A stretch of 64,000 nt of DNA, taken from assembly GCF_006345805.1 (NCBI RefSeq), contig NW_021832127.1, positions 62,001 through 126,000 of the forward strand, read 5' to 3'. This stretch comes from Octopus sinensis. Lineage: Eukaryota. Under the pieces are notes generated by a model. That model did no database searches and was not told where the DNA came from. It saw only the letters and a program-made list of their open reading frames with translations. Below, piece after piece: positions 12,814 through 64,000 of the stretch. Made by a program: the position numbers and the translations under genes. Position 1 is the stretch's first letter; each line of letters opens with the position of its first letter.

Positions 12814-13050
12814 CATTATGACTGCTACGGACATAAAACATATTTTAAATGATGTGAATGTGTGTGAAAAGCTTAAAGCAACATAATTTGATAGTTTATA
12901 AAATTTAAAATTAATTATTTTGTCCTTTATTTGATTCTTTTCATGTAAACTATCTTTGTATCTCCATTCGAAAATTCTACATTAACGCGGTTATAAGAAA
13001 GATTGATTTGATCGTGACAGTATCACAACAAGCACTTTCAAATTTTTTCA

Positions 13051-13186
13051 AACCTAACCCCAACCTTTGCCCTAACCTTTACCCTAACCCTAACCCCAAC
13101 CTTTACCCTAACCTTTACCCTAACCCTAAACCCAACCTTTACCCTAACCTTTACCCTAACCCTAATCTTACCTTAGCCCTAACCCC
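13051..13186 (+). repeat. Degenerate telomere-like array (CCCTAA / CCTTTA / CCCCAA units)
   Basis: Directly visible ...CCCTAACCTTTACCCTAACCCTAACCCCAACC...; produces the spurious PNPNL ORF. Confidence 0.9.
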
Positions 13187-13404
13187 GACAATAAACAGCA
13201 TGCTTAATTTATTGTTTTTTAATTTTAATGGTTAAGCATTGAAAAAATAAAAATCCATAATATTATTAATTTTTAAATTAATAAGTAAATATATTTCAAT
13301 CGTCTAAATATTTTTAATTGAAATTTTAGAAATTTAGAGCAATGGTAACGCGTGGGGCATGGTAACGCGTGGGCATGTGACATAATATATACATTTTTGT
13401 TATT

Positions 13405-15380
13405 GACGGCGGAGTTCGTCCTATCGCCGTCGGGAACATTTTCCGACGCCTGGCTTCAAAGCTCGCCTGCTGGTCGGTCTCCCCGGAACTTGCAAAAGCT
13501 TTCCTCCCGTTACAGCTAGGAGTTGGGGTTCCCTCAGGCTGCGAGGCAGCGGTGCATGCCGCCAGACGCTGTGTGACCGAGAGTTTACATCCCCGAATTC
13601 TAGTCAAACTAGACATTACCAACGCATTTAACAGTGTCCGCCGCGACTCTGTGCTGGAATCTTGCTTTCTTCGTTGCCCATCCATTTATCGGTTCGTGCA
13701 CCAAAGCTACGGCTCTCCTACTCTTCTTATCTCCGGCTCTTCCACCATTATTTCCGCCACCGGTGTACAACAGGGCGATCCTCTCGGCCCTCTCCTTTTT
13801 TCGCTGGCCATCGATGAAGCGGTCCGCTCGTGCACTTCTGAGCTCAACGTCTGGTACCTCGACGACGCCTCCATTGGAGACCCGGCCGATACTGTTGTAA
13901 ATGACCTGAACAATGTGGCTCCGATACTGGCTTCTATAGGCCTTACCGTGAACCCACAAAAATCAGAGATTTTCAATATTGGATACGACCATGCACTCTT
14001 TACTCTGGAAATCCAGCCCCTGTTTGACCATCATCTCCCAGCCATACGCACCGTTCTGCCCGAAGAACTTACTCTTCTCGGTACGCCTCTATTCTCGTCC
14101 GGAATCCCATCTTTCCTCTGCGCTAAACTTCTTAATATGGAAAAATCATTCGACACTCTTAAATCCATCGACGCCCATGTGGCTTTCTTTCTACTGAAGA
14201 ACTTTCTTGCCTTTCCTCGTTTGGAGTATGCACTTCGCACTTCTCCCTGTTTCCGATTCCCGGATGCAGTCGGAGAATTCGATTCGCTGCTCAGGAATAC
14301 TCTCGTTCAAATCTCAAACGTACATTTTGACGAAATGGGCTGGAAACAGGCTATCCTGCCTATCAGGGACGGGGGTCTCGGATTCCAAGCCCCCTCGGTC
14401 CTCTCCCTGCCATGCTTTCTTTTTTCCTCTCACCGATGCATGCCTCTCGTAGTCCAGATCCTTCCTCCTCCCTCTGGATCGCTCACGGACTCAGAGCTTT
14501 CATACGGCACATCGTTGTGGACAGATTGCGGACTAAAAACTCCCGTTGACCTATGCCTTATGCGCGAGTGGACGGAGATCAGCAGCTCTCAGTCTTTCCG
14601 GTACTTACTGTCTCACGGAGACCAACACCGGCGTGCTTGTCTGTTGTCTGGAGCATCTCCACGCACTGGCGCCTGGATCAACGCCTATCCTTCTCCTGCA
14701 GCTGGAACCTTCCTGGACCCAGACTGTTTAAGAATCGGAATATCTCTCCGACTCGGCTTGGACATTTGCCAGCCTCACCAATGCCGTTGCGGGCCTCATA
14801 TAGACCGCAAAGGTCTACACCCGCTCTCCTGCCGCAAATGCCCTGGGAGGTTCCCCAGGCACGGACAGCTTAATTCCATAATAAAGCGTCTGCTCGAGGC
14901 AACCGGCATCCCGTGCCAGCTGGAGCCCTCTGGCCTTAACAGGGGCGATGGCAAGAAGCCGGACGGCGTCTCGCTCTTCCCGTTCAAGTGCGGCAAAGCG
15001 ATCGTCTGGGACGCGACATGCTCTGACACTTTTGCGTCAACATGCCTTCTCGCGTCCGCGATCGAAGCTGGCACAGCGGCGAGGAGGGCAGAGACCCGGA
15101 AGAAAGACAAGTACGCCTCGCTCGCCGACAGATTCCTCTTTGTGCCTGTTTCAGTCGAAACATCAGGCACATTCTGCCCAGCCACGCTACGTTTTCTCAC
15201 CGAGAGAGGCCGTCACCTCGGGAGGATTAGAAACGACCCCCGCGAGGTCAATCGGCTTTTTGAGCGCGTCTCAATAGCCGTACTCAGGGGGAACAGTTTC
15301 TCTATTCTCTCTGCGGCTAGTAGCTGACTCCCTGTTCCATTTTCTTTTCTACTTGTTAATTATTTTTTTTAAAAAAAAAA
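13405..15380 (+). mobile_element. 5'-truncated CRE-like retrotransposon with uninterrupted RT-zinc finger-RLE frame
   Basis: Open frame 13405-15327 (in frame with ORF 13552): DGGVRPIAVG, KLDITNAFN, GVQQGDPLGPLLF, WYLDD, GDGKKPDG, VLRGNS; poly(A) at 15371-15380; near-TSD ACATTTT(T)GTTATT. Confidence 0.93.
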
Positions 15381-15779: not shown

Positions 15780-16477
15780 CTATGTTAAGTTTAGTCTCGT
15801 AGAAAAAATTTTACTTAAAAATAGTTTAAAATTGAATTTTAAATATAAATCAAACAAGTTTGCATCCGTTATCCGAGATCTATATTGACTTTTTAAATAT
15901 TTCATTTTGGAAAATATAGACTCACATAAATATGTGCTTCCGAATAAAATGTGAATATTTCTTGCCATTTCACGTAAATTTGGATAATCTGTCGCTGATT
16001 TCCATACATTCAACAAATCTTCGCTTTCATTAAATTTATTTATCAAAATTAAATCATTTTTTAATTTCAATAATTCAATTTGAAATTCCAATGGCGCATT
16101 CTCAATCGAAAAACTATGTGGTCCTGCAGTTAATTGAAGTTTGAGTTCAATTTTTTTAAATTCGTTAAATCGCTTTTCAAATTGTTTCAAAATATAATCG
16201 AATATAGTATTAAATGTATTTGGTGTAAGATCGTCATAATTAATTATTTTGTCATCAATGAGATTTTTGACTTTTTGAAAATGAAATAATTCATTTTTTT
16301 CTATGTGAATCTTCAGTAGGCGGCATGTATCCTTTTATGGATATTTTTAATTATTATTTAGGGTTTTTCTTGATTAATTAACACTATGAGCATTATATTT
16401 AAGATTAGTTGCTCGATGACCTAATTGTGCCCACGGCCGCACATTCATCGACTCAAGGCCGCACTTGCGCACCCCTG
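15780..16477 (-). mobile_element. hAT (GTF2IRD2/SPIN-like) remnant with one terminus
   Basis: C-terminal hAT motif LFGSTYLCESIFSKMKYLKSQYRSRITD; TIR CAGGGGTGCGCAAGTGCGGCC ending at 16477 flanked by TTCTAGAC. Confidence 0.75.
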
Positions 16478-16573
16478 TTCTAGACCTACCATCAGCTACG
16501 TCATATATCAGTATATAAATGTAATCAATATATAAATTACAAAGGGAAATCAAATGAAAGAAAATAACAAGAA

Positions 16574-17985
<1,412 letters not shown>

Positions 17986-39345: not shown

Positions 39346-41697
39346 AATAAACAATTCGAGTTTTTAGAGAATATTATATCAAACATCCATTTCGATAATA
39401 TTGGATAATATATTGATTGGTTATGCAACGTCGGTGTAATAAAAAGGCGGGAATAATACGCACTTCAATTCAAGTAGTGCTGTAAGTATCTTTAAACAAT
39501 CCCAATTATTTGTTGTATTTATCCTTCTAAACCGTCATGGTAAACAAACAAGATGCTTCCACAGATATGCCTGTTTCATTAGTTTCCCCATCGAATATAT
39601 ATAATCAATACGATCTGCTAATTGAGTTAATTACAAACACTGATAAATAAAAATACACCAAAATTACAAAAAATTAAACAACTAAACTTAATCAGTCTCG
39701 ACAGACATGCAGCTGCAGCACAACAAAGAAAGAAACTTGAAGAGGACCAGATGGTGCCACTTCTATTTGACTATTCAAGATAAAAACACTCAATAAAATT
39801 AAGGGAAAAACTTGTCTTTCCAAGAACCGACCCACATCAACCAGCAAAATGGTTTTCAGCAGCAGCACTCCCTGTTCGACAAAGCCACATCTCGCCCTCT
39901 ACAGCCAAGACTGCAGAGTTATATTTCCGAGTGCATGATGTAGGCACTACTAAGGACCACAATCTTATGAAATCCATCAGCCCTGTTATTCGGAATAATG
40001 TTGACAAATCCGATTGTCATTTTGTGCAATCTAAGAGTGAGTGTGTAAATTAAACAAGGCGATTCATCAATAAGCGAGGACGAATTACCTCAGCACGACA
40101 CTGTGGAAGCCTTGTCGAACAAGACAGATTCGGGAGTGGAGGCCGGGTTGAATAAGGAAGAGACTAATGCACAATATGAGGAGATTGGGGAGGCGGTCTA
40201 TAAAACCAGCGTCCTTGAATTGGAGAGACAGGAAAGAAGGAGGGTAATTTAGCACTTGATTTCAGAGGGTTGGAGACGTGATGGCTAAAATTCGAAAATC
40301 TGCCAAAGACCTACCAATCGAGAGGTAGGAAGAAATTAGTTTCTCTACAAATCAAACATAGTTATTATTGTTAGAGTTTTCATAATGTGCTGATTTAATA
40401 CTTTTGTTGCTCACAATTTGTATCGTCCAGTTGCAATAGTTGACTAGAGAGAGATCGATTCCTGAAAAATAAGTTAATCGGCAAAGTAATCTCTATTCTA
40501 TTGGTAGTAATGCGTATTTATTTAAATGACAAAATGGATTTAACAAATCAGTCCTCTCACTGAGCTCTATCCTTCCAATACTAAACACATCAGACCAGCA
40601 GTAGCAAACTTTCTTATCATCCGATGACAACTTACTGAACTCAGCCAGCAACTGAGCACGCACATGCACAACTATCTCCACGACTATCGTCTCTACAAAG
40701 CACTCATCAATCAAAACAATCTGCTCCATAAACTGAAGGTGCTCAAAGTCACACTCCTTTAGAACTTGCAATCCACGTGCAGTCCGTGCCCCCTGCCTTG
40801 TCATGACAGTAATGCGTGTTTAATCGACGACAGTCTGCCAAGTCCGCTCAAAGTATAGGCCCTGTGAAGTGCAGGAACCGTGCACCCCTGCCTGTGATTG
40901 TGACCAACCCGTGATTTGTGAGCACGTGGAGGTTCAACAGCCCAATGATCGGAATTTGGATAAGCACGGTGGATATGAAAAGTATATTTGAGATTATTTC
41001 GAAATGATGATGATGGAGAACACCCAAATGAATCAAATGATGATGCAGCGAATAATGATGGGGACTAACAATGTATTCATATGGGGACTAACTTGCCAAC
41101 AGAACAACCAACACTGTAGAGGGCATTCCAATTGCCATGATGTCATCACGTCTACCATGATAATCCTCTCAATTCGTGAAACAGAAACTTATTTTATAAT
41201 ATGTCACGGTCCACGAGTGTGCCTATGCCGTAGGTGTGCCTCCATCGCAATTTTTTTCCGTTTTTTTTTGTAAATCGGTGCATCTATATCGATTAGTCCT
41301 AAATCATTATTTATTTAGTTTTTTGTTACTTATTGGAAATATTCCAATGTCGGTGATTACAGCAACAATAAAATACTGAAAGTATCACAATTTAAATATT
41401 TATATATTTCCTGATTTTATAAAATATGTTTTTAATAACTAATATATATAAAAAATTGAGTAAAAATTTTTTAATTAAAAAAAATTTATAAGGATGGATT
41501 GACCCTAACTCTAACCCTAAGGATGCATTAACTCTAAAACCTAATCATTTAAAATTACAAAAGAATGTTTTTATAATTATTTTAATGTGAAAAATGTTTT
41601 TTTACCAAAATCCCCTCATCATTCTCAACTTCATAGTTGTCGCCATTCTGTTTCACAACTTTTGTCGCATGATAAAATTGCAACTTTATCCCAAAAG

Positions 41698-41815
41698 CTA
41701 ACCTAACTTCAACCTTATCCCTAACCCTAACCACAACCTTATCCCTATCCCTAACCACAACCTTATCCCTATCCCTAACCTTATCCCTAACCCAACCTTA
41801 TCACTAACCCTAACC
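41698..41815 (+). repeat. Degenerate telomere-like array (CCCTAA / CCCTAT / CCTTAT), continuing at 42980-43007 after the Merlin
   Basis: Directly visible; shorter variant also at about 41503-41545. Confidence 0.88.
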
Positions 41816-41821
41816 TTTTCC

Positions 41822-42971
41822 GGTACTTTTGTCGAAGTGGTCGCAGTTTTTTAGGCCTTTTAAAAAATCTAATAATTTTTGAGGTGGAATATATTATATT
41901 TTATTTAAGTCGCTCTATCAATAATTTAAAATATTATTAAATTTTTTACTAATTTATTTCTAATTTTTTAATATTATGGCGAGCATGTACCTAATATTGA
42001 TATAAACTGGCACTATAGGTCACATGGAAAATTCTGTTGTGGACTTATGCAACATCAAATTCCGACAGCTCCCAATAAGTAAGGAGGATGCAGTGCATTT
42101 TCTGCAAAATGTGGATATCCTTTCAAAATCACGTATATGTCCGAAGGGACATCAGATGGAATTAGTCTTGGGACCGAAGCTCAATTGGAAATGCTCAAGA
42201 GTTGGTTGTAGAGTCCAATGTTCTATTAAAAAAGGTATAATTTCTCTCTCAAATAATTCTAGATACCTGGTTAGAGATTGTAGATTGCCATTTGAGGATG
42301 TCATCGCCTACATATACTTATGGAGTTACGATAGGCTACCTTCAAATGGCTTCATCACGAATACAATTGGGGTGAACATACATATGTCGATTGGGCTATG
42401 TTTTTACGTGAAGTCTGTGTGGACGCACTTGTTAAAAGATCTGACGGCAAAATTGGTATTATTAATGTTTATTTCAGGTGGTCCTGGTATGATTGTGGAG
42501 GTAGACGAGAGTATGTTTTCCAAACGGAAAACACTCTGGAAGAGTTTTACCAAAACAGTGGGTCTTCGGTGGTATTTGTCGAGCCACCAAACAGTGTTTT
42601 TCTGCAACCAGTCGCGGATAGGAGCAGAGAAACACTGCTCAGTCTAGTAATTCGATATGTCGAGTGGGAAGCATTATTTATAGTGACTGCTGGAAAGGTT
42701 AGCATTATTGATTAACATTTAGGGTATTCAACTGATCAATTGGTTGAAAACGGCTACACACACGAAACCGTTAACCATAAGTAAGGAAATATAATATATT
42801 CAGAAAATTCTTTGTGGATCCAACGACGGGAGTGCACACCCAGACAGTAGAACGAATGTGGGGAAGTGCAAAATGCAAGAATAAAGCTCAAAGAGGAGCT
42901 GTAAGACATCATCTGGGATCTTATTTCGCAGGTTTTTTTAGTTAGTTATTTTTTCAGACGACAAAAGTACC
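41822..42971 (+). mobile_element. Merlin (IS1595/ISXO2-like) DNA transposon, 1150 bp
   Basis: 13-bp TIR GGTACTTTTGTCG / CGACAAAAGTACC; 8-bp TSD CCTTTTCC at 41814-41821 and 42972-42979; DDE motifs IVEVDES, YSDCWKGY, HTQTVERMW; micro-introns 42456-42477, 42698-42722, 42781-42803; frameshifts. Confidence 0.93.
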
Positions 42972-43275
42972 CCTTTTCCCTATCCCTAACCTAATCCCTA
43001 ACCCTAACAAAAAAAAATCATTATTTTTGAAAGCCGACGATAGCGGACTCTTTTCGATCGATCTATGTCTTCCGTGAATTCTCCGAATCGTTGATAATTT
43101 TTGATTAAATCATTTCAGCATTCCAGAGGGTAACCTTCATGCCCACACAAAAATAGTAATTAATAGTATTTTATAATTTTACAAAATAAATATCTATATA
43201 ATAAAATACACCTACGGCATAGGCACACCACTGGACCGTGACATAATATTTCATTAATTCAAATAATATCTAAAA

Positions 43276-44230
43276 ATGTGTTAATTATTTAAATTTTGAT
43301 TGGCGCTTTGCCGATTTCCTCTGCTGGAATGTTGCTGGACGACGAATCTGTCCGCATCGGAATCTGTTTACGGCTTGGCATAGAGATTTGCCTGCCACAT
43401 CAGTGCAGATGCGGAAAGGTCATTGACAGGAGAGGGCTACACCCCCTCTCTTGTCGCCTCAGTACCGGCCGTATACCCAGACATGCCGCCTTGAATGATA
43501 TTGTCAAGCGCGCGCTCAACGCCGCTGGATTCCCTTCGGTCCTAGAGCCGGTTGGTTTAGACCGTGGCGACGGAAAACGTCCCGACGGGTCCACGCTATT
43601 CCCGTTCAAGGGGGGACTCGCTCTCGTTTGGGACGTGACCTGTGTCGACTCGTTTTCCTCGTCATCTCTCATGGACTCTGCCTCCCGCCCTGGCTCAGCC
43701 TCCGCACATGCCGAAACAAAAAAAATAACAAAGTATGCCGCATTGGAGAACACCTGCCTTTTCGTCCCCCTGTTTTTCGAAACGAGCGGATAATCGGCCC
43801 AAAAGCTCTTGAGTTCCTTTCGGAATCGGCTTGATGATCTCAAGGAAGAGTCACGAGAGACGTGAGTCTAGTTGGCTTTTTCAGCGCATTTCGCTCGCGA
43901 TATTGCGCGGAAACTGCCTATCTATTTGCGCGTCCTCTCAATCAAAGAATTAACATCATTAATTTACTTAATTAACAATTATTTTAGTTTAATAAAAAAA
44001 AAAAAATTTTGATTTTTGCTGGGAAAGCCGACACGACTGCAGAAGGAAACACAGAAATATTGCTAAAAGAGCAAAATCTGAACGAAATGTTTAAAAATCG
44101 TTATACTGAACAAGACCGGGATTATACAAATCACATATCTCGCTACTTACCTGTGGACGCCACTCCTCCTGTTCTTTTGGGATGGTCTCCTTTCAAAATG
44201 GAAAACTTTGAAAAACGTTGTGACAAATAA
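43276..44230 (+). CDS. RAMAC: RNMT-activating mini-protein (RAM/FAM103A1-like), 68 aa, first intron contains a CRE copy
   Basis: ATGT (43276-43279) spliced GTT...AAG to 44028 gives MSDTTAEG...NEMFKNRYTEQDRDYTNHISRYLPVDATPPVLLGWS, matching the remembered RAM motif EEMFASRFTENDKEY...PPIVEEW. Confidence 0.72.
43302..44003 (+). mobile_element. 5'-truncated CRE-like retrotransposon inside RAMAC intron 1
   Basis: Zinc finger + GDGKRPDG RLE; poly(A); TSD AAATTTTGATT at 43291-43301 and 44004-44014; close relative of 46771-47543. Confidence 0.92.
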
Positions 44231-45093: not shown

Positions 45094-46140
45094 ATGTCTT
45101 TGACAAGTAATAACACAACTCTTATAATTCAGCATTAGGAAATGTCCGAGGGAGAGGAATAGTAGTGGCATCTACATTTTTTTGTTTGAGTATTATTTAT
45201 ACACAGAGAGTCAATCTAAATGTGGTTGCTGCAGGAATTGTTACTGTTGACAAATATGACACAAAGAATGTAAATAACCATATATGATTTCAAGAAACTG
45301 TTTGTTCGGACTACTGGAGAACGAGGAAGCGCTTTGATGTCGTTTTATATAGGATACACTCTGACTTAAATTCTTGGTGGAGTGTTGGCTAAAAAATATG
45401 GCCAAAAATTAATTCTTACAATCTCGATCATAATATCAACTGTAATGTGTGTTTTTTCGCCCTTGGCAATTGAATACTCTGTTTATGCCCTGATAGCTTT
45501 GAGAATAATCATGGAACTTGTACAGGTCTAAAATGTTTTGATAGTTTTTAGGGATGCATTTTTCCTGCAATCTTTCTCATTATTGTGAACTGGTTTCCGG
45601 ACAATTATCGAAGCACAGGCAATGGAATGATCATACCAGGCATTTTTGATTGATAATATTCAGGGATCAATGTTGGTTCTATTTTATCTTATTCGGTTGT
45701 TTCTGGGCTGGCAAAAAACGAGTGTTATATTTTTGGCATATTTTTAGTTAATTTTATTTTCAGGAGGTTTAGCAACTCTTTATTTAATATTTTTTCTTGT
45801 CTTTTTTACCGACTCTCCAAAGGATAACAAATGGATCACTTCAGAAGAAAAAAAATTTTTGGAAGAAAACGTTACCGTAAAAACTTCCAAGACTATTAAG
45901 GAAAAATTTTGATTTTATTTTTAGGATTTTCCGTGGCGCCAGGCACTGACCTCAAAAGTTTTTTTGTCCTTATTATTTGCGTATTCTGCAGAATCATATA
46001 GCGTGTTTTTGCTTATTAGTTATAATTCGTGGATAATCGACGGGTTGTATAATATTGAAGTAAAAAATGTATTCTTGAATAAATATTAAATTGCAAACGA
46101 ACATTACATTTTTAATTCCAATCGTTTCTTGGCTTGGAGG
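45094..46140 (+). pseudogene. SLC17-family MFS anion transporter, N-terminal half, disrupted
   Basis: IIYTQRVNLNV, SFYIGYTLT*ILGG (TAA at 45367), LRIIMELVQGCIFPA...WFP, TDSPKDNKWITSEEK, FPWRQALTSK; in-frame stop, a frameshift, and no C-terminal half found. Confidence 0.78.
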
Positions 46141-46770
46141 ATTTGTTTCATGCTATTTATCTGACGTTCTTGTCCGAAGGGAGGCAATGGGGAAATTAAA
46201 GTTGAGAAACTCATTTTTGCTCTTCGTGTAAATTATGCAACATCAGAAAGAACGGTTACCATTGCTCTTCCTTTGATCGTTTTTTTCACCTTTCCGCTTC
46301 GGAAAATCTAAGTTGTCTGTCGAGGTGGCCTTGCCCCTGCTGTCTTCCTAGCTTTAGGCAATCAAGCCTGGTCCAGCAGTCGGTAGTCTCTTCTCCAGAC
46401 AAATTCTTAATCAAACGAAATTGGTGAAGGCATTCTTCACCCGCTCGTCCGGATTCTACAAATCTATAGTTATTCTATCTCGGATTCCTAAATCGACCTC
46501 AAAAATCTTCAACGCATTAAAAGATGGCTGAAAAATGCAAACGACCTTGATAATCTCAGGGGTATAGCACGCAACCGCCCATCCGGAAAAAATATGTGTG
46601 ACGCAGTTTCATGTGTGACAAAAATAGCTTTTTCTTTACGTAATGTTCCGATAGTGAAAATAATGATATAATTTTTATGTAGATTGAATCATAGTTAATC
46701 CTTCACCCTCTTTTAACTATTAAAAAGCCTCTAAATGCAATATTAAACTATATTAATCAAACTGCTTATA

Positions 46771-47543
46771 CTCGAAGATATCCGCCTACGTGCTGACCAA
46801 TTTCAGTTGGCAAGCATCAATTGTGCCTGTCAACCCCACTTGGGCGATTGGCTTGACGCTTTGCCGATTTCCTCTGCTGGAATGTTGCTGGACGACGAAT
46901 CTGTCCGCATCGGAATCTGTTTACGGCTTGGCATAGAGATTTGCCAGCCGCACCATTGCAGATGTGGACAACTCATTGACAGGAGAGGTTTACACCCTCT
47001 CTCTTGTCGCCTCAGTGCCGGCAGGATCCCCAGGCACGCCTCATTGAATGACGTTGTGAAGCGCGCGCTTAACGCCGCTGGATTTCCCTCGATGTTGGAA
47101 CCGATAGGACTAGACCGTGGAGATGGAAAACGCCCTGACGGGTCGACCTTATTCCCGTTCAGGAAGGGAATGGCACTCGTGTGGGATGTTACCTGCGTAG
47201 ACTCATTTTCTCCTTCATCGTTGGTCGACTCCGCTTCTCGTCCTGGATCTGCATCTGGCCTTGTTGAATCTAGGAAAACTGCTAAATATGCCTCTTTGAC
47301 CGATACCTGCTGCTTCATTCCCCTGGCTTTCGAGACCAGTGGGATAATTGGACCCAAAGCCCTCAAACTCCTCTTAGAGATTGGTTCAATCATCTCGAGG
47401 GGGAGTCACGACAGTCGTGAAACGAGCTGGCTTTTTCAGCGGATATCGTTCGCGATATTACGTGGAAATCGCCTGTCCATCCGCTCGGCGACTCATCTAG
47501 TTTAGTTAACTTCTCTTCTCTAATTTTCTTGTTTCAAAAAAAA
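46771..47543 (+). mobile_element. 5'-truncated CRE-like retrotransposon
   Basis: ORF 46807-47505 with zinc finger and RLE; poly(A); TSD AAACTGCTTATA at 46759-46770 and 47544-47555. Confidence 0.93.
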
Positions 47544-48133
47544 AAACTGCTTATAAAGGTAGTCAAACTGCTTATAAAGGTATTCAAGATACAAATCAAA
47601 CTTCTTGTACAGGTAGTCAAAAGACTTTAACTTTAATGATTCCCCCTAGTACCTTCAAAATGATTTTCTTCATCACGAGCCTACCTTATTCTCATTGCAT
47701 GATCGGTTCTTTCCCGGGTGAAGGATTATTAACACCTTTTACAGTTCTTATTTTTGAGATAATCTTTCAAACTCACCTAACGGAAAGTTCGAGACCTATT
47801 TGTTGGCGGAATGGCCTTTTACTGAGGCTGAAATCATTGCTTCAGTAGGGTAGTCCTTAAGGATTTACTTTTCGCAAAACTATACAAGTAATTTAAATTT
47901 AGGAAAAAATAAAATTCAATTTATTAGATTACTAGTTACTTTATATTAAATAAAGGTAATCGTAAAGTTGAGACAATGACAAGAAACGACCTTTCAATAA
48001 AGAAATAACCTTTTCATAACTTATTTGGCATCTTTGTTAAGAAAAAAATACCCTATACGATCAAGGAATAACCTTTTCAGAATCAAAAATAGTTGTCTCG
48101 CGATTTCATTGTAATATTTTCATTTAAGGTTAT

Positions 48134-51520: not shown

Positions 51521-53435
51521 GTCATTATGTGCGCCGTCAGTGTAAAATAATTTTTGACTGTGTTTTCTTTTTTCGTTAAATCAAGTGTTTCATTAAAAAA
51601 CAAAAGATATATTCCAAATAACGATGAAAATTATGTAAATGAATTATGACACACTTATCTACCAATTATGTCGTCATCTTTGCATAGATTAAAATTAACA
51701 AGGAATTCGAAAGACCTTCCACTATTTTCCGACATTGCCATAAATTGTAAATCTTTCTTAAGTTATCTCACTAATTGGCGTCAAGTTCAGGATTGTCTCT
51801 TTTTGCCAAACACATAGACATCATTGACATAAAACTTAGCGCATATTTGCTTTTTGTCGTCAAGTTTTTTTGTTGAAATAAATTATGACGCCAAATTTTT
51901 GTTTAAAAACAATCCCCTACGCCATCCGATACTTGGTTAAATTACATTCTAAAATGCTACCCTAAAACAATAAACCTCTGCTTATTTACTAAAAAGATAG
52001 ATTCTAAAGTTGCCGATGGGGATGTGGCATAGACCTGACTACATGCAAGTGCTCTTTTATTTATTTTTGTAAATAATGTATCAATAAACTAAATAGAGCC
52101 TCCTACAATGCTAAATTTAGAATTAATCTGGTACAAACTTCATTTATTCATTTCCGCAATGGAAAATCGGTCGTGCCCCAGATAGCCATTCACTTCGGTC
52201 TTATTATTGCACTCAACTTCTCTGGAAAGTAAAAACGTCTCTATCTTCTTCACAGTGCATTTTGAAATCATTATATCGATCTCATTCAAGAGTGCTCTTA
52301 TCAACACTACTCATCTCAAATGCAATTGGAACGAATTTCACACTGTTTTGAGAGTAAATAAAAATCACGTTTAGAAATTTAAATAAAATATTGATTATGT
52401 ATCTTAATTTTTCAAATATTAGCAATCAACCATCTCCCTCCTACCAAAAAAGGGGAGAATCGTCCACCGTTGAGAACCACTTGACTAATGCATGTAAGTT
52501 TAATTTAACTCCTGTAATAGTGGAAAAGTGCAATTGTATATTGTTCTTTTTAACGAATCTTTTTCTTGTTTCAATTCCATCACATTTGTTTAATTCCTTC
52601 GATAATAGATGAATCGACTATTTTTAATTACATGGGTAATCTATTAAGTTTAAAAAAAGTATGCTAAGTTAATGTTTGACAGATAAAAACGAGATAAAAT
52701 AAAATTTATAAAACCTCCAATCCTCGCGATACATGTAAACTGTTCTAAAAAGATTTCAGCTGCAGCATGAAATATTCTATTCTTTACGTTACAAGACGTT
52801 GTCCTGCTACATTTTAATTTTAATAAAAAATATGATAATGAAAATATAAATTTTTAATAAATTTTGAGAGAAGAATAAAGACGACAAGCCGATTCTGTCG
52901 TCTTCTACCTGTAATTCAGAAGGAACAAATAATTGCCTTATAAAATATATTAAAATCCAGCAAAAAATGAAAAACAAAAAAGATGATAATGCGACGAAAT
53001 TGAATTAGGAAACGAAATCGTACTTTCTCATGATGGCGATTCACAAAGATAATAGATGGTACCCATTGTATGACCAAGCTTCTACCAAAAAATACTGAGT
53101 CATGAATAAAGGAAAATTACTGTCTGTTCGAAAAAACTTGAAATTGAAATTCAAAAACAATAATTTTAGATATTTAATGAATAATTCATAAATAGAATTT
53201 AAAAAAACTTTTTTTTGAAAATCATCAATAATTTAAAACCGTACACGTCTGGACTGTGAAATTTATTAACCAAAAACATCAATAATCGTAAGTTTATACT
53301 CCATTCTTTGTGAATAAACTTTTAATTGAAAAGAATTATTTCATTTTGTCCAAAATGGCTAAAATTCTTTTAATATGTACTTTTTTCCTTAGGGCTTAGT
53401 TAATTTTGACAAACTTAATTAATATAAATTCAGTA

Positions 53436-54550
53436 TAACATTTTCAGTTCAATTCTAAAATTTTTTATATTAATTTTGACAATTCAATATTCAATTTTGA
53501 CACTTTTTTCATCAATTTTGACATTTTTTATGTTAATTTTGACTTTTGCCGATTTTTCATTTATTTTATATTTTCTGATTCGCCGTTCTTGTACAAATTT
53601 TATGTCAAGAAAAAATTCAAGAGTGTCAGAAGCTACAAGAAGAGCACTTATAAATAAGGATGAAAAGAGTGTACAGCCTGCTCGCGATCTTGGGTCAGAC
53701 TACAGCTATAGCCATTGGAAGAAATGGAAATCCGTATTTTTGTAAACGTGGAGGTAGAAGGGATGTTCGATTAAACTTACGGATGATGATATGAATTTGA
53801 TAATTGAAAAAATTGAGAATAATTCATCGATAACACTGAGGAATTACGAAAATTGGTAATAATAAAGTTTGTATTGCGACAATATATAATCGACTTGATG
53901 GGCGATTGAATACCTACAAAATGCTGCGAAGATAACCAATTTCAAGGAAAAATCCAGAAAATATAGAAAAATATTTTCATTGGATTATTAACGTAATAAA
54001 AATAGAAAAATACATTTGGAAGAAACAAATTTAATCTCTTTACATAAAAAAATTCGGCCGATCCTATATGCGATCACGTGTGATAGTTTCAGTAAGGACA
54101 AGAAAAGGAGTGAATCTTAACGTCATTTTAGCAATTGATAAGAATGGAACAATTGTAAGATTTGAATCACATTGGATCTATAAAATCTAAATTTAGCAAT
54201 TTTATGACGGCATTATCTGACAATTTAGTTGAAGAGAAAATTATTATTTATATGGATAATGCTCAAATCCATAAAAAACAAGGAAATTTTAAAGGCGTGC
54301 GAGTAGAACATGCAATTCGAAGATTTGATCCACCATATTCTCCGCAGCTTAATCCATTGATTAATAAAATTGTCTTTATTAACTCTCATCTTGATTTAGC
54401 CGATTAGAAAAAGTCCTTGTATGTATCCAAACGGCCAATTTTGTCAAAATTGATCGAAAAAATGTCAAAATTGCTTATTGCATTGTCAAAGTTGAATGTT
54501 GCATTTTCAGAATTGATGCAAAAAGTGTCAAAATTGAACTGAAAATGGTA
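53436..54550 (+). mobile_element. Tc1/IS630-like element, degenerate
   Basis: TIR TA(A/C)CATTTTCAGTTCAATT at both ends flanked by TA; subterminal TTTTGACA repeats; YMDNAQIH...PYSPQLNP; paralog of 61839-64000. Confidence 0.85.
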
Positions 54551-54730
54551 TAGTTAAGGGAATCTGCTAATCTCTTGAAGAATTATTTTTTTAAAAGTAT
54601 GATGTTTTATTCCAAAAATTAATGGAAACCACAATCATTTTAAAAATGAATAATAATTCTAGGATTTGTCACGATAAAACGGTTTTATAGTAGAACAAAA
54701 ACAAAATTATAGAAATGAATTTGATAAACA

Positions 54731-56480
54731 CTAGAAGACTTCATTTCGGAAACGCTTTCCAACCCCGCTATCACTCTGTTAGAAATTTTTAGGATATCAT
54801 GACATTTTACCGATGAAAAACTTCTTTTTTCTTGAGAAATACATTGAGAGTGAATTGGAAAATAATCGAAAAGTCCTTGAGCCAACCTCCATTCACATAC
54901 CATCATCCACCCTCTATATTGCCATTACTCTCGTATCTACTTTTGAGCCCGTGGGTCATTTCTTGTTATAAATTGACACTTTTCTAGTTTTTTAACCAAG
55001 GCTGATGCTTGTCGCGAATTCACTCCAAGTCTCTCACTAATAGCAGTTGAATTTATTTCTCGCGTTTCAGTTGCCGCCATTAGAACACGTCGAAATAGAC
55101 AGACATTCTAAGCGATGGCATTTTATAATCAACTTTAACAGCCTTCGCACTTAATGAACCAAGAGATCGGTCAGTGCATTCATACTTTTTCAAATCCTAG
55201 AAAATCATTAAAAAATCACACTTTGACATCCGAGAGAGGTTTTTTCTATAAAATTAAAGATATTAAGATAACTTTGGCACAATTATAGCACACGTGGATC
55301 GACGGGGCTTCTTTTTCTTCAATAATTGAGAAACAAATTGCATGTTGCCAATGTTTACAAATATTACAAATTATCATTAGTCCGTCGGCCTGTGGTCGTC
55401 AGTTAAAGAATAATGACCTCTTGAAAACCACAAGGACAGGTTACACCGAGATACGGACTCTCCACACATTCTCCCGTCACTTTATATAAAAAAGGATTGG
55501 TGCTAACATATCGTGTCATTTACAGAAGAGGCAGCAGAATCAAGTGAAATTAAATCAGAGCTTAATGTTTCAAGAGCGGTCGATTTTACAGAAAAACTTA
55601 AAAAATTAAAAAATAAAAAACCCATGCCACGGCTAAAATTTAAAAACTAACAAAAACCGTCTGAACTGAGCCGACGTCAACTGAGATGCAATCTTCAGTG
55701 AATTTATTAAGAAGTTCAGCTGTTGGAATAAATCCTTGTGGTTCATAGTCCACAGGAGTAACTAAAATATACAAATAATTGATTTACTTTCGTCATAATA
55801 GAATAGTTTCATGTTTATTTTTATTTCCGACGGAAGTGGCCCAAGTGTGTGAGTCAGGATTGCGATTGTGCGAACAAGTTTAAATGTTGCGGATTTATTG
55901 TCTATTTCAGAAAATAAAGTTTGTATTCCATCATTTTGGCTGTAAAATTATATTTACTAAAACTAACTTGTAAATGTCTAATCCATTTTCATTAAAATAG
56001 GAAATTTTAAATGTGTATTTTTCAATAATTTTCTAAAAATAACAGGTCAGTGGAAAAATACTTCTGATTTATTTTCGTCGTCTAAAAACTATTTAATTAA
56101 GTTTATTACTATCAAATGTTACCTCTAAGACAATCGCCCTCAACTAGACTATATAATTAAAAAAATACAAATTTTCTGTTTATAGCGTCAAAGCACCCTC
56201 TCAGCCATTTGATGATTTTTTGAGCACTCGGACAATCTGATTTCTCACGGAGAATCTTCAAGTTCAGATCGTCAATAGTATGATCATTGTAGGCGGATTC
56301 GGGGAAAATAGCCCGGTTATATGTAATACTGGATATTGATATTGCTAGTAATTTTTTAAGGAAGATTGTTGATTGGTCTGATTCTTCGATTTTATTTCCA
56401 AAAATTGCATTCTAGTATTTAGGTGATATTATTCAAATAACATTTTCAGTGTATCTAACAACAGTCGGACGTGCACACAT
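54731..56480 (-). CDS. HORMAD: Meiotic HORMA-domain protein (Hop1/HORMAD type) with PHD finger and winged-helix module
   Basis: KKLLAISISSITYNRAIFPE...DDLNLKILRE...KWLRGCFDAI; LGPLPSEIKINMKLFYYDEITPVDYEPQGF; PHD TCPCG...CNICKHWQHAIC...HVCYNC; ISERLGVNSRQASALVKKLEKCQFI; many 20-35 nt introns; last exon tentative. Confidence 0.88.
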
Positions 56481-56743
56481 TGAAATGTTATATTTTTCCC
56501 GCTTTAATGTACTATAATGTATAGAAATATTAAAAATAATAAAAATATTTTAATACATAAACAAATCTATAAATTACTAATTTGAAAGTGGACAATGAGA
56601 CAAAAACTATGATACTATTAAAAACGGGAAACTATTACTGGTGGCACACAATATTCCGCAATTTTTGGGGAATAATGCCGTTTCAAAGATATTTATAAAA
56701 CTACAGAAAACATGACTTTTGAAAAATGCAGGAACTTCAGCCA

Positions 56744-56815
56744 AGTCTGTGAGTCAGGACTTCGATTGTGAGAACAAGTTTAAATGTTGCGGATTCATTG
56801 TCCATTTCAGGAAAT
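56744..56815 (-). repeat. Duplicated HORMA exon fragment upstream of HORMAD
   Basis: High similarity to 55849-55918 (DNESATFKLV.TI..LTH.LG*). Confidence 0.75.
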
Positions 56816-57534
56816 AGGAACTTTCGGCCTCAGATTTCTCAGGTTACACCTTTGTTCTCCCGTTTTTAGATAGGGATTAATAATCCCTTACCCAATGAAG
56901 GCAGACAATAATTAGAATAGTTTTTATTGTTCAAGAAAAACCAAAAACCCAAAGAATAAGAAAAAAATCATTAACGGGGAGATAAAAACAAGGCACCGAA
57001 GTGTCTCTTTTCATGCTAAACCCGATTATAATTATCCAACACAACTTTTCTTCAGGACCATCAGGATCGTGGGCACAGAGGATTCTTGCAAGCCCTCTAG
57101 CCTTTCGTCAAGTTGTATTCCATAAGCCAGTTTCAATGCGAAACATCTTGTTTTTGAACTGTTCGACAAACTATGATTTCGAAAAAAGCTGTTGAAAATT
57201 TCAGTTATTCTCATCGAAAACCAAACTCTAAATTGAAATTACTAATTAATTACGAAAAGGTTAGACAGATTTTATTTTAAGAAATTCTGAAAAACCTAAA
57301 GATGATTAATTGGACGATACGAGGCAGCCGAGCTCTTCAAAGATACGTTTTATAAGCATCATTGCGCTTCATTTATAATTCCTTCACCGTTTTCTATCTC
57401 AAGTATGTGATATCTCAGGACTGCTGTTACTTTTAAAAGCTAGCGATAAATAAATAAAAATAAGGACTCTACAAAATTAAAGCATCATTAATCAATCAAG
57501 TTGTTACAAAAAAGTAAAAGTTAATATTTTTAAA

Positions 57535-61050: not shown

Positions 61051-61838
61051 TCAAATTATATTTATAGAATGTATAATTTTTTAAATATATAATTTTACCG
61101 ACCTAATAGCATCATTCAAAATTATAATTAAAAAAATATCATCAGACTATAAACATACCCAGAAATTATCTTCAAATTTGGAAGACATTTGGCACAAATT
61201 ATCTATAAATGATTTAATCTATGAATAATTTATCCAAGAATAAGAATATAAATAAAATTATTAATAATAGTTCAATAGAGTAAACCTAGGTAAGACCGAA
61301 AAATTAATTTTTTAAATGGGTCATACCACAATGAAGACAAAAGGAATTATTTTATTATTTTTAATAATCAGTATAATAAAAAAATAAAATTTATTAAACA
61401 TAAAATATATTTATATTAGAAATTAGTATCATTTAACTAATTTATTTTAGAATACTTCTGTTTATAAACAATATAACATTTCACGGATTTTTAATTAACC
61501 AAAAAATAATGTGAAGGACGTATAAAGCCAATAAAAATTTGAGGCTTTGAAAAAACCACAAAATTAAATTCTGAAAACCAACCGTCTTTTTTTGTCATAA
61601 TATTACATTGAGTTATATTCGATTTTACAAATATACAATCATTGACGGAGATTAGAAATTAACAGATTGTCATATGACTGAGTGCATGAAATATTATCCA
61701 ATTTGTCGTTTTTATTCATTAAAATAGCACTTAAAAACGTCTAGAGTAAAAATTTAGTATTTTTAAGTGCCTCTTTTAAGATGAAAGTTGATTTTATTCA
61801 ATTGAGCAGTTAAGCTGCTAGCGTATTTCGCGTATCTA

Positions 61839-64000
61839 TACCATTTTCAGTTCAAGTTTGACATTTTTTGCACCAATTTTGACAATGCGATATTCAAATT
61901 TGACAATGCGACATTCAATTTTGACACTTTTTACATCAATTTTGAGAATGCAATAAGCAATATTGACATTTTTTACATCGGTTTTGACAATGCGATATTC
62001 AAATTTGACAATGCGACATTCAATTTTGACACTTTTTACATCAATTTTGACTTTTGCCGATTTGTCATTTATTTTATATTTTCTGATTCGTCGTCCCTGT
62101 ACGAATTTTATGTCAAGAAAAAATTCAAGAGTGTCAGAAGGTACAAGAAGAGCACTTATAAATAAGGATGAAGAGGGCGGTGATTATATACAGCTTGCTT
62201 GCGATCTTGGTGTCAAGAGGACAACAGCTATAGCCATTGTAAAAAGTGGAAATCCGTATTTTTGTAAACGTGGAGGTAGAAGGGATGCTACGATAATACT
62301 TACGGATGATGATATGAATTTGATAATTGAAACAATTGAGAATAATCCATCGATAACATTGAAGGAATTACGCAAATTGGTAAATAATAAAGTTTGTATT
62401 GCAACAATAATATTGTTATCGGAAAAACAATACAGGCCTTCAAAAAAGCAACCTTTCGCCTACTGTAAAATTTGGTGGGGGGAAAGTTATGGTCTGGGGC
62501 TGTTTTTCCTATTACGGAATGGGCTCGTTTGCTTTTATACACGGGAATATGAATTCCGCACTTTATATCAACACACTATGTAACCATTTATGGGAATCTG
62601 CAAAAAAATGGAGCTTAGTGACTTTATTTTCAACAAGACATGGCACCATGTCATACTTCCAAGATGACAATGCGATTTTTTCAAGAAAGTAAACCTTTTA
62701 CTATGGGCACCTCAATCACCGGATTTAAATCCGATCGAACATATATGGGCTCATATGAAGAGGGAATTAAACACCTTTCATCCAAAGAATGTTTCGGAAT
62801 TGAAAGAAAAAATCGAAAATATTTGGAACGAAATACCGATTAGTTTTATAAAAAAATTAATCGAAAGCATGCCGAATAGAGCACAAAAGCTTTTTAAGGC
62901 AAAGTAACTTTAAATAATCAAAAATAAAACGGTTTTTTATTGCGTTTGATTTTTTGTTAGTTATAATTTGTTAAGTAAAAATGATTATAAGTTCAAAAAT
63001 AAAAATAAAACTAGTGTTAAAAAATGATAAATTATTCAATTCTTTAATAAAAACAATATAGTTGCATAGTAAATTTTTGATATTTCGAAAAAACGGTTTT
63101 TTTGCACCTAGTGTATATAACCGACTTGATGGGCGATTGATTATTTACAAAATGCTGCGAAGAGAACCAATTTCTAGTATTTTCATTGGATTATCAACGT
63201 AATACAAATAGAAAAATACATTTGAACGAAACAAATTTTAATCTTTTTACGTTAAAAAAATTCGGCCGATCCTTTACAGGATCACGTGCGATAGTTCCAG
63301 TAAGGGCAAGCAAAGGAGTGAATCTTAACGTTATTTTGGCAATTGATGACAATGGAACAATTGTGAGATTTGAATCACACATTGGATCTATAAAATCGAA
63401 ATTTTGCAATTTTATGACGGCATTATCGGACAGTTTAGCTAGAGAGGAAATTATTATTTATATGGATAATGCTCCAATCCATAAAAAACAAGGAAATTTT
63501 GAAGGCGTGAGAGTAGAACATACAATTCAAAGATTTGATGCACCATATTCTCCGCAGCTAAATCCATGCGAAAGCTGTTTTTCGATTATCAAGGCTGGGA
63601 TTAAGAAATATTTATCCAATCACAATAATCCTCATAACGATGTTCATGCAGCAGGAAATGGAACGCTGACGTAATTTCGAGCACTATTATTACAAAATGC
63701 CTTAGAATATTCTATGACAAATCTAACTCGCGAGAAAATACGGAATTTTTACAGAAATGCAGAAAAAATTATTGCGAATTGTACGATTGGGATTCCATTA
63801 ACCTGACCTGATTAATAAATTGTCTTTATTAACTCTCATCTTGATTTAGCCGCATAGAAAAATTCTTATGTGTGTCCGTTATAAAAATATTTGTCAAAAT
63901 TAATTTAAAAAATGTCAAAACTGAATATCGCATTGTCAAAACCAAAGTAAAAAATGTCAATATTGCTTATTGCATTGTCAAAATTGATGCAAAAAATGTC
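61839..64000 (+). mobile_element. Tc1/IS630-like element (D34E spacing) running off the window, interrupted by another Tc1
   Basis: TA + TACCATTTTCAGTTCAA left TIR; HTH region MSRKNSRVSE...NPSITLKEL; MDNAPIH-34 aa-E (PYSPQLNPCE); subterminal tandem repeats at both ends. Confidence 0.88.
62410..63113 (+). mobile_element. Truncated Tc1 inserted in the previous element
   Basis: GGKVMVWGCFSYYG, FQDDNA, SPDLNPIEHIW; right end TTTTTTGCACCTAGTG-TA; host sequence GCAACAATA|TATAACCGAC is contiguous in the 53436 paralog. Confidence 0.82.

Follow-up and report, generated by a model that had tools for sequence, protein, structure and literature searches.

Within a 64,000-nt stretch of contig NW_021832127.1 (positions 62,001 to 126,000, referred to here as the window), a 5′-truncated copy of a retrotransposon without long terminal repeats (non-LTR) of the R2-like group has almost certainly integrated, in the sense direction, into intron 1 (35 nt, phase 1) of a true homolog of RAM, the RNMT-activating mini protein encoded by RAMAC. 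The intron has grown from 35 to 748 nt, a 21-fold expansion. The source genome is most likely that of a dicyemid, a parasite of the octopus kidney, and all 14 introns reconstructed in three neighbouring genes (14/14) are 20–59 nt long. The event itself is ordinary and the element belongs to a known group; it is the setting that is unusual, a 21-fold expansion where every intron checked is shorter than 60 nt.

Structure of the interrupted intron

The RAM gene lies on the + strand. The coding part of its first exon (43276–43279) consists of the ATG at 43276–43278 and a T at 43279, which is the first base of a codon 2 split in phase 1. The present intron extends from 43280 to 44027 (748 nt, GTTAAT...GAAAG), and exon 2 (44028–44230, 203 nt) encodes residues 2–68 of the RAM homolog. 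The insert occupies 43302–44006 (705 nt) and represents the 3′ end of a non-LTR retrotransposon that has lost its 5′ part. Its body (43302–43993) contains the remnant of a zinc-knuckle and restriction-like endonuclease region, in a frame that continues to 43793, followed by a 3′ untranslated region. This is succeeded by a poly(A) tail of 13 uninterrupted A residues (43994–44006), the last three of which are ambiguous with the adjoining target-site duplication. The duplication, AAATTTTGATT, is found on the + strand at 43291–43301 and again at 44004–44014, and the two copies are identical at 11 of 11 positions. An exact 11-nt duplication at both ends of an element is far beyond chance; together with the poly(A) tail and the 5′ truncation, such a duplication marks target-primed reverse transcription. 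The reading frame of the insert is on the + strand, in sense to the RAM gene. Two 1-nt deletions relative to a sister copy in the window break the frame of the insert after ...FFETSG. With its perfect duplication and a tail of nothing but A, the insertion appears to be fairly recent.

When the flanks are joined computationally, the empty site reads ATGT, then GTTAATTATTTAAATTTTGATTTTTGCTGGGAAAG, then CCGAC, which is a 35-nt GT...AG intron in phase 1. This restored intron has the ends (GTTAAT...AAAG) and the length of the short introns nearby, and its removal restores the RAM reading frame. An original prediction, made from the letters of the sequence without database searches, had proposed the same coordinates, a 748-nt intron, a restored 35-nt GT...AG intron and the N-terminus MSDTTAEG; all were reproduced from the sequence. 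Its description of a sense-oriented retrotransposon with a poly(A) tail and a target-site duplication was likewise confirmed by the 13 A residues, the 11/11-nt match and the + strand frame.

Upstream of the insert, the remnant of the original intron (43280–43301, + strand) retains the donor GTTAAT and the first copy of the duplication. At the other end, the last 13 nt of the intron (44015–44027, + strand, acceptor AAAG) are unchanged. Because the 11-nt target site was duplicated, it is in fact the final 24 nt of the intron that are preserved, and the donor is also unchanged by the insertion. A branch-point-like TTGAT lies in the downstream copy of the duplication, 14 nt before the acceptor. 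A TGAY motif is present in 8 of the 14 local introns, and TTGAT could serve as a candidate branch site, although the assignment is weak. Folding of the 748-nt intron RNA gave z = −3.5, but no pairing that would convincingly draw the two splice sites close to each other.

The insert and the sister copy share an exact run of 89 nt (43304–43392 and 46857–46945, respectively), which starts at the 5′ end of the insert and is followed by sequence of 75% identity (291/388). At that level of identity the chance of such a run is ~1e-11, which suggests either gene conversion between these two neighbouring copies or template switching as the insert was made. No further copy of the locus turned up when three reading frames of the window were looked up as exact proteins in public assemblies, or when metagenome contigs were scanned for exact DNA matches to one exon-2 pattern and one transposon pattern.

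The RAM homolog

The spliced RAM product has 68 amino acids, MSDTTAEG...CDK. In a profile search its residues 18–55 matched the Pfam family RAM (PF15320) with 28.6 bits against a curated gathering cut-off of 25 (E = 2.1e-6), a match that spans only positions 1–35 of the 83 in the profile. The product also matched the RAM chain (chain C) of the human RNMT-RAM crystal structure, PDB 5E8J, with E = 0.007. The earlier identification of 44028–44230 as a RAM homolog, which had been left to a profile search to decide, is upheld by these results. A HMMER pass of the spliced RAM query over 1.84 billion representative proteins gave seven matches, two of them short proteins that are clear members of the RAM family. 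These two genuine relatives belong to a trematode, Calicophoron daubneyi, and an acanthocephalan, Neoechinorhynchus agilis. The other five are long repetitive proteins aligned in several stretches, one of which was fetched and is a long repeat protein; all five are taken to be spurious. Word-indexed protein searches returned no RAM relatives, whether the query was the spliced RAM protein or an alignment of three RAM sequences. The RAM gene of C. daubneyi is present in three tandem copies, 3,840 nt apart, which have been fused in one gene model.

RAM has been described as a vertebrate-only protein that co-evolved with the RNMT lobe (PMC5137418, PMC12599247). The window gene and the proteins of C. 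daubneyi and N. agilis indicate that RAM-domain proteins do exist outside vertebrates, and these spiralian members bear on the claim that RAM and the RNMT lobe co-evolved in vertebrates only.

The residues of human RAM that contact RNMT were taken from the published list (PMC5137418) and transferred through an alignment of the window product with 5E8J, in which 14 of these human residues could be aligned. Seven of the 14 are identical (F15, R18, Y26, R32, P37, P38 and W43 in human numbering), six are conservatively replaced (F11, F19, E25, Y29, I39 and V40), and E42 is not conserved; A7 and V8 were not alignable. The RNA-binding domain and the C-terminal PY nuclear-localisation signal (human residues 56–118) are absent, the 68-aa protein ending earlier. 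As read from its sequence, the window RAM is an activation-domain-only protein. It resembles human RAM/RAMAC (FAM103A1, which activates the cap methyltransferase RNMT as its subunit) in the RNMT-activation domain motif, with most contacts identical or conservatively replaced. In contrast to the human protein, it has only 68 residues, lacks an equivalent of residues 56–118, and occurs in a spiralian.

The RAM stop codon, TAA at 44228–44230, overlaps an AATAAA hexamer (44225–44230), and the stop and the probable poly(A) signal thus coincide. In the MetAP2 gene of the window there is no AATAAA within 140 nt of the stop; the AATAAA signal is not universal here.

Several lines of evidence bear on the start of the protein. 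Residues I12, L19 and E21 are conserved among the three spiralian homologs, and all precede Met22 (ATG 44087), the first in-frame Met of exon 2; coding therefore starts upstream of Met22. With or without the insert, no ATG precedes Met22 when the exon-2 frame is read back from 44028. In the present sequence the frame passes into the poly(A) and the transposon tail, and in the empty-site reconstruction a TAA at 43290–43292 closes the frame. Since the RAM frame has no upstream ATG of its own, the start codon must come from splicing. The 35-nt intron model supplies an N-terminus beginning MS..., like the MSSGND of the trematode homolog. Human RAMAC begins MTDTAEA, which is close to the MSDTTAEG of the window protein. 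In the trematode homolog the N-terminus and the domain are in a single exon, and for that reason the position of the intron neither supports nor opposes the split-start model.

The retrotransposon and its relatives

The sister copy (46771–47546, + strand) lies 3.5 kb downstream of the insert, to which it is 78% identical over 624 nt. It is also 5′-truncated, and has an intact C-terminal frame of 232 amino acids, an 11-A tail and its own 12-nt target-site duplication, AAACTGCTTATA, on the + strand at 46759–46770 and 47544–47555. The truncation point of the insert lies downstream of the reverse transcriptase, and the evidence for this enzyme comes from a longer relative at 13381–15324. This copy contains an RVT_1 domain (E = 1.3e-14) followed by the same C-terminal domain, and the solved reverse transcriptases closest to it are R2 proteins. 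When the 232-aa frame of the sister was aligned with 39 relatives (40 sequences), the Cys/His zinc ligands C46/C51/C53/H63/C67 were invariant, as were D111, D127 and K157. An AlphaFold model of the sister C-terminal domain had a pLDDT of 92. In a fold search with this domain the seven best matches in the PDB were all R2 proteins (E 2e-6 to 3e-4), and PD-(D/E)xK nucleases came after them. Its modelled fold places the element among the R2-like non-LTR retrotransposons, which are equipped with a restriction-like endonuclease. None of the copies within the window includes the N-terminal DNA-binding part.

The insert had been called a CRE element. Insertion into spliced-leader RNA genes is the classic trait of the CRE clade (CRE1/2, SLACS, CZAR). 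Spliced-leader targeting was not seen for the two window copies, of which one lies at AAATTTTGATT in the RAMAC intron and the other at AAACTGCTTATA elsewhere, and an Rfam search over the whole window found no spliced-leader or other RNA gene. The name was right insofar as this is a retrotransposon of the R2-like, restriction-like-endonuclease group; membership of the CRE clade is not borne out, and the two copies are in unrelated targets. The element resembles R2, R4, NeSL, CRE and Hero in its domain order, with a zinc knuckle and a PD-(D/E)xK endonuclease C-terminal to the reverse transcriptase. It differs from R2-type elements in that the window copies are in unrelated, non-repetitive targets rather than in ribosomal DNA or spliced-leader genes.

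Short introns and the genome of origin

The MetAP2 gene (16577–17985, − strand) has six introns of 39, 29, 59, 31, 26 and 25 nt, and its spliced product aligns end to end with human MetAP2 (E = 4e-139). The introns of a sialin-like gene are 25, 26 and 24 nt long, and those of a HORMAD-like gene, which were reconstructed by eye, are 20, 41, 29, 28 and 26 nt. GTT and GTA donors are typical of these neighbouring genes. The window has ~34% G+C and is crowded with transposons. The best database relatives of its retrotransposon, at 63% identity, are proteins labelled Octopus sinensis. The contig that carries the best of them, VCDQ01013100.1 (Octopus sinensis GCA_006345805.1), has several repeat families in common with the window, at 70–82% identity. 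It also contains a V-ATPase c″ gene (~15970–16800, − strand) with two 24-nt introns, the spliced product of which matches the human subunit with E = 2e-50. Because of these 24-nt introns and the common repeat families, VCDQ01013100.1 looks like dicyemid-type DNA, that is, DNA of a parasite in the assembly of its octopus host, with its retrotransposon frame annotated as an Octopus protein.

In the genome of Dicyema japonicum, G+C is 36.7%, repeats make up 49% and introns average 38 bp (PMC6736024), and the median intron length in Dicyema sp. is 27 bp (PMC6543705). Comparably short introns are otherwise known only from myxobolid myxozoans, and the splice signals of dicyemids are reported to be reduced to GTa...AG (PMC13644364). 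How introns of 20–30 nt are recognized in dicyemids and myxozoans is an open question (PMC13644364). The introns of the window resemble these ultra-short dicyemid and myxobolid introns in length, in their GTa/GTt donors and in a bare AG acceptor (PMC13644364, PMC6543705, PMC6736024). The difference is that those papers describe short introns, whereas the window locus bears a transposon-expanded one. Taken together, the short introns, the composition, the relatives on an octopus contig and the spiralian relatives of RAM make a dicyemid the most likely source of the window. A myxozoan origin was considered and rejected: the RAM relatives are spiralian, and the transposon relatives are on contigs with 24-nt introns in an octopus assembly.

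With a published mean (38 bp, D. japonicum) above the median (27 bp, Dicyema sp.), there should be some hundreds of annotated long introns among expressed dicyemid genes. Since such a tail of longer annotated introns is implied, the RAM locus may not be unique. The original prediction spoke of a spliceosome tuned to introns of ~30 nt; the local range of 20–59 nt (n = 14) agrees with this, and the framing has to be softened in view of the published mean and median (PMC6736024, PMC6543705). No description of transposon-bearing long introns in dicyemid genomes was found in the literature, and the supplements of the dicyemid and intron papers contain neither intron-length tables nor a RAM entry.

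Possible removal of the expanded intron

The reading that we favour, with confidence that comes close to even, is that the 748-nt intron is still removed often enough for RAM function. To yield the full-length 68-aa protein, the spliceosome would now have to join the original donor (43280) to the original acceptor (44027), although 748 nt lie between them. Correct splicing would have to be frequent enough to keep the gene working, and mis-spliced, intron-retaining and prematurely polyadenylated transcripts would be expected as by-products. The gene had probably already tolerated the arrival of an older DNA transposon, of the Merlin type, 26 nt upstream of its ATG.

The principal alternative is a null or strongly weakened allele, produced by mis-splicing to decoy AGs, by retention of the intron, or by cleavage at a new AATAAA. 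Such an allele would persist if it were heterozygous in a clonal parasite with small populations, if another copy of the gene existed, or if RAM were dispensable. This alternative falls somewhat short of an even chance, and the facts that weigh for it weigh against continued function. In a setting where introns measure 20–59 nt and splice signals are the minimal GTa...AG (PMC13644364), the 748-nt intron contains 33 GT and 32 AG dinucleotides that may act as decoys. The first AG after the donor (43382–43385), which would define an intron of 104 or 106 nt, leads to an immediate stop. If the intron is retained, the message reads ATG TGT TAA, and the next ATG opens a 155-codon transposon frame from 43329. 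The poly(A) tail and the AAT that precedes it create an AATAAA in the sense direction at 43991–43996, with a U-rich stretch after it, ~30 nt from the acceptor, and transcripts could end there without reaching exon 2. As the insertion is apparently young, the intactness of the reading frame tells nothing of selection since its arrival. In addition, the next gene downstream, the sialin-like gene, appears to be a pseudogene already, which would make this a region of gene decay, and the promoter side of RAM would be cut off or replaced by the 2-kb Merlin-type transposon 26 nt upstream of the ATG.

Other facts speak for continued function and against a null allele. The core splice signals are all intact, since the donor, the branch-like motif and the acceptor were left untouched, and the coding sequence has no defect. 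The RAM frame is open, and 13 of the 14 alignable RNMT-contact positions are conserved, despite the older transposon upstream. The published intron statistics imply longer annotated introns in other dicyemid genes, in a genome of which 49% is repeats. No second RAM copy was found within the 64-kb window or in contig VCDQ01013100.1.

Rescue by a short intron is not available, as no GT in the insert gives an in-frame ATG with an intron of less than 157 nt; every route to full-length protein would thus remove at least 157 nt.

A larger claim would follow from continued function: that the dicyemid spliceosome accurately pairs sites 748 nt apart, past 32 decoy AGs and a sense poly(A) signal, and that RAM is a functional activation-domain-only cofactor in a lineage said to be without RAM. 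As a whole, this claim has somewhat less than an even chance.

Far less probable is a transcription start inside or downstream of the insert, with translation from Met22 (ATG 44087) to yield a protein of 47 amino acids. Met22 is the first in-frame ATG of exon 2, and the frame from it is intact to the stop. It aligns, however, with human Met14, and the product would lack RAM helix 1 (residues 4–14) together with the contact residue F11 (PMC5137418), as well as the positions conserved among the spiralian homologs. The insert is 5′-truncated and hence without a promoter of its own element, and transcripts initiated upstream would meet many earlier ATGs, including that of the 155-codon transposon frame.

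A different first exon, derived from the transposon or located upstream of the Merlin-type element, is just as improbable. An ATG at 43834 combined with donors at 43850–43871 would give introns of 157–178 nt, and an ATG at 41158, upstream of the Merlin-type element, is followed by a phase-1 GT at 41177. All these candidates call for introns far longer than is usual locally, or else for a promoter of which there is no sign, and the ATG at 41158 is inside another reading frame (40992–41270). The 35-nt model, on the other hand, yields the MS... N-terminus that resembles the trematode MSSGND. Least credible of all is that the structure is an assembly artefact or that the exon is not part of a gene, for only the general risk of repeat-rich assemblies can be cited in favour. 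Against it stand the exact 11-nt duplication on either side of a 3′ terminus complete with its poly(A) tail, a RAM profile score that exceeds the curated threshold, and the existence of homologs.

Relation to other intronic insertions

Insertion of transposons into introns is commonplace, and the sense orientation is usually selected against. The insert resembles intronic, 5′-truncated copies of long interspersed elements (LINEs) in animal genes in its poly(A) tail, target-site duplication, 5′ truncation and spared splice sites. It differs from these LINE copies in that its host intron was only 35 nt, in a 21-fold growth that takes it far beyond the local 20–59 nt, and in its sense orientation. 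A young, precisely bounded insertion that alters only the length of an intron is a clean natural construct for the effect of length on splicing. If accurate splicing of the 748-nt intron is true, extreme shortness of introns is not a mechanical requirement of the dicyemid splicing machinery, and the RAM gene becomes a defined locus for asking how splice sites pair under minimal sequence signals. If more such loci are present genome-wide, a comparison of transposon-bearing with empty introns would separate mechanical constraint from deletion bias. A single locus known from DNA alone is a lead, not a result.

Neighbouring sequences

The element that ends upstream of RAM had been described as a miniature inverted-repeat transposable element (MITE) ending 32 bp from the ATG. 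Both points need correction. It is a decayed DNA transposon of the IS1595/ISXO2 (Merlin) type, 2,054 nt in length (41196–43249, no strand assigned), recognized by its inverted ends and by the transposase family PF12762, and its end at 43249 is 26 nt before the ATG. The inverted ends are 42 nt long (41196–41237 and 43208–43249) and 90% complementary. The transposase is frameshifted; PF12762 was matched on a stitched frame with E = 1.1e-6 and 29.2 bits against a cut-off of 27. With its ends only 90% matched and its transposase frameshifted, the Merlin-type element looks older than the retrotransposon insert. As it now stands, it would part the RAM gene from its upstream promoter region or replace that region.

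A Met/Gln-rich open frame at 40992–41270 (+ strand), with a weak match to DUF4587 below the cut-off, runs into the left inverted end of the Merlin-type element. If this element were removed, the stop of the frame would be ~20 nt before the RAM start. The frame may raise the question of where the RAM promoter is located, or of co-transcription. In or beside transposons, at 13026–13192, 41675–41817 and 42960–43010, are arrays whose 12-nt units derive from the telomere-type repeat CCCTAA; the Merlin-type element contains two of these three arrays.

The sialin-like (SLC17) gene (45100–46230, + strand) begins 0.9 kb downstream of RAM and aligns with residues 108–367 of human sialin. It has a TAA exactly at the position of the conserved Gln of TQIPGG. 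At two of its exon junctions no GT/GC...AG pair was found in a search anchored within ±9 nt. Its C-terminal third is missing, and it breaks off among transposon sequence, of which the sister copy is a part. These features make it a likely pseudogene. The TAA gave rise to the idea of a ciliate genetic code, which was rejected because the MetAP2, RAM and transposon frames use standard stops and contain no in-frame TAA or TAG, and because the sialin-like gene is a likely pseudogene.

In the HORMAD-like gene (55250–56411, − strand) a piece of 76 nt is duplicated 900 nt away with 91% identity (55841–55916 and 56741–56816). Two related elements of the Tc1/mariner type, at 53429–54560 and 61827–64000, have long inverted ends composed of tandem 21-nt units, and a DDE_3 transposase is present in this pair at 63186–63674.

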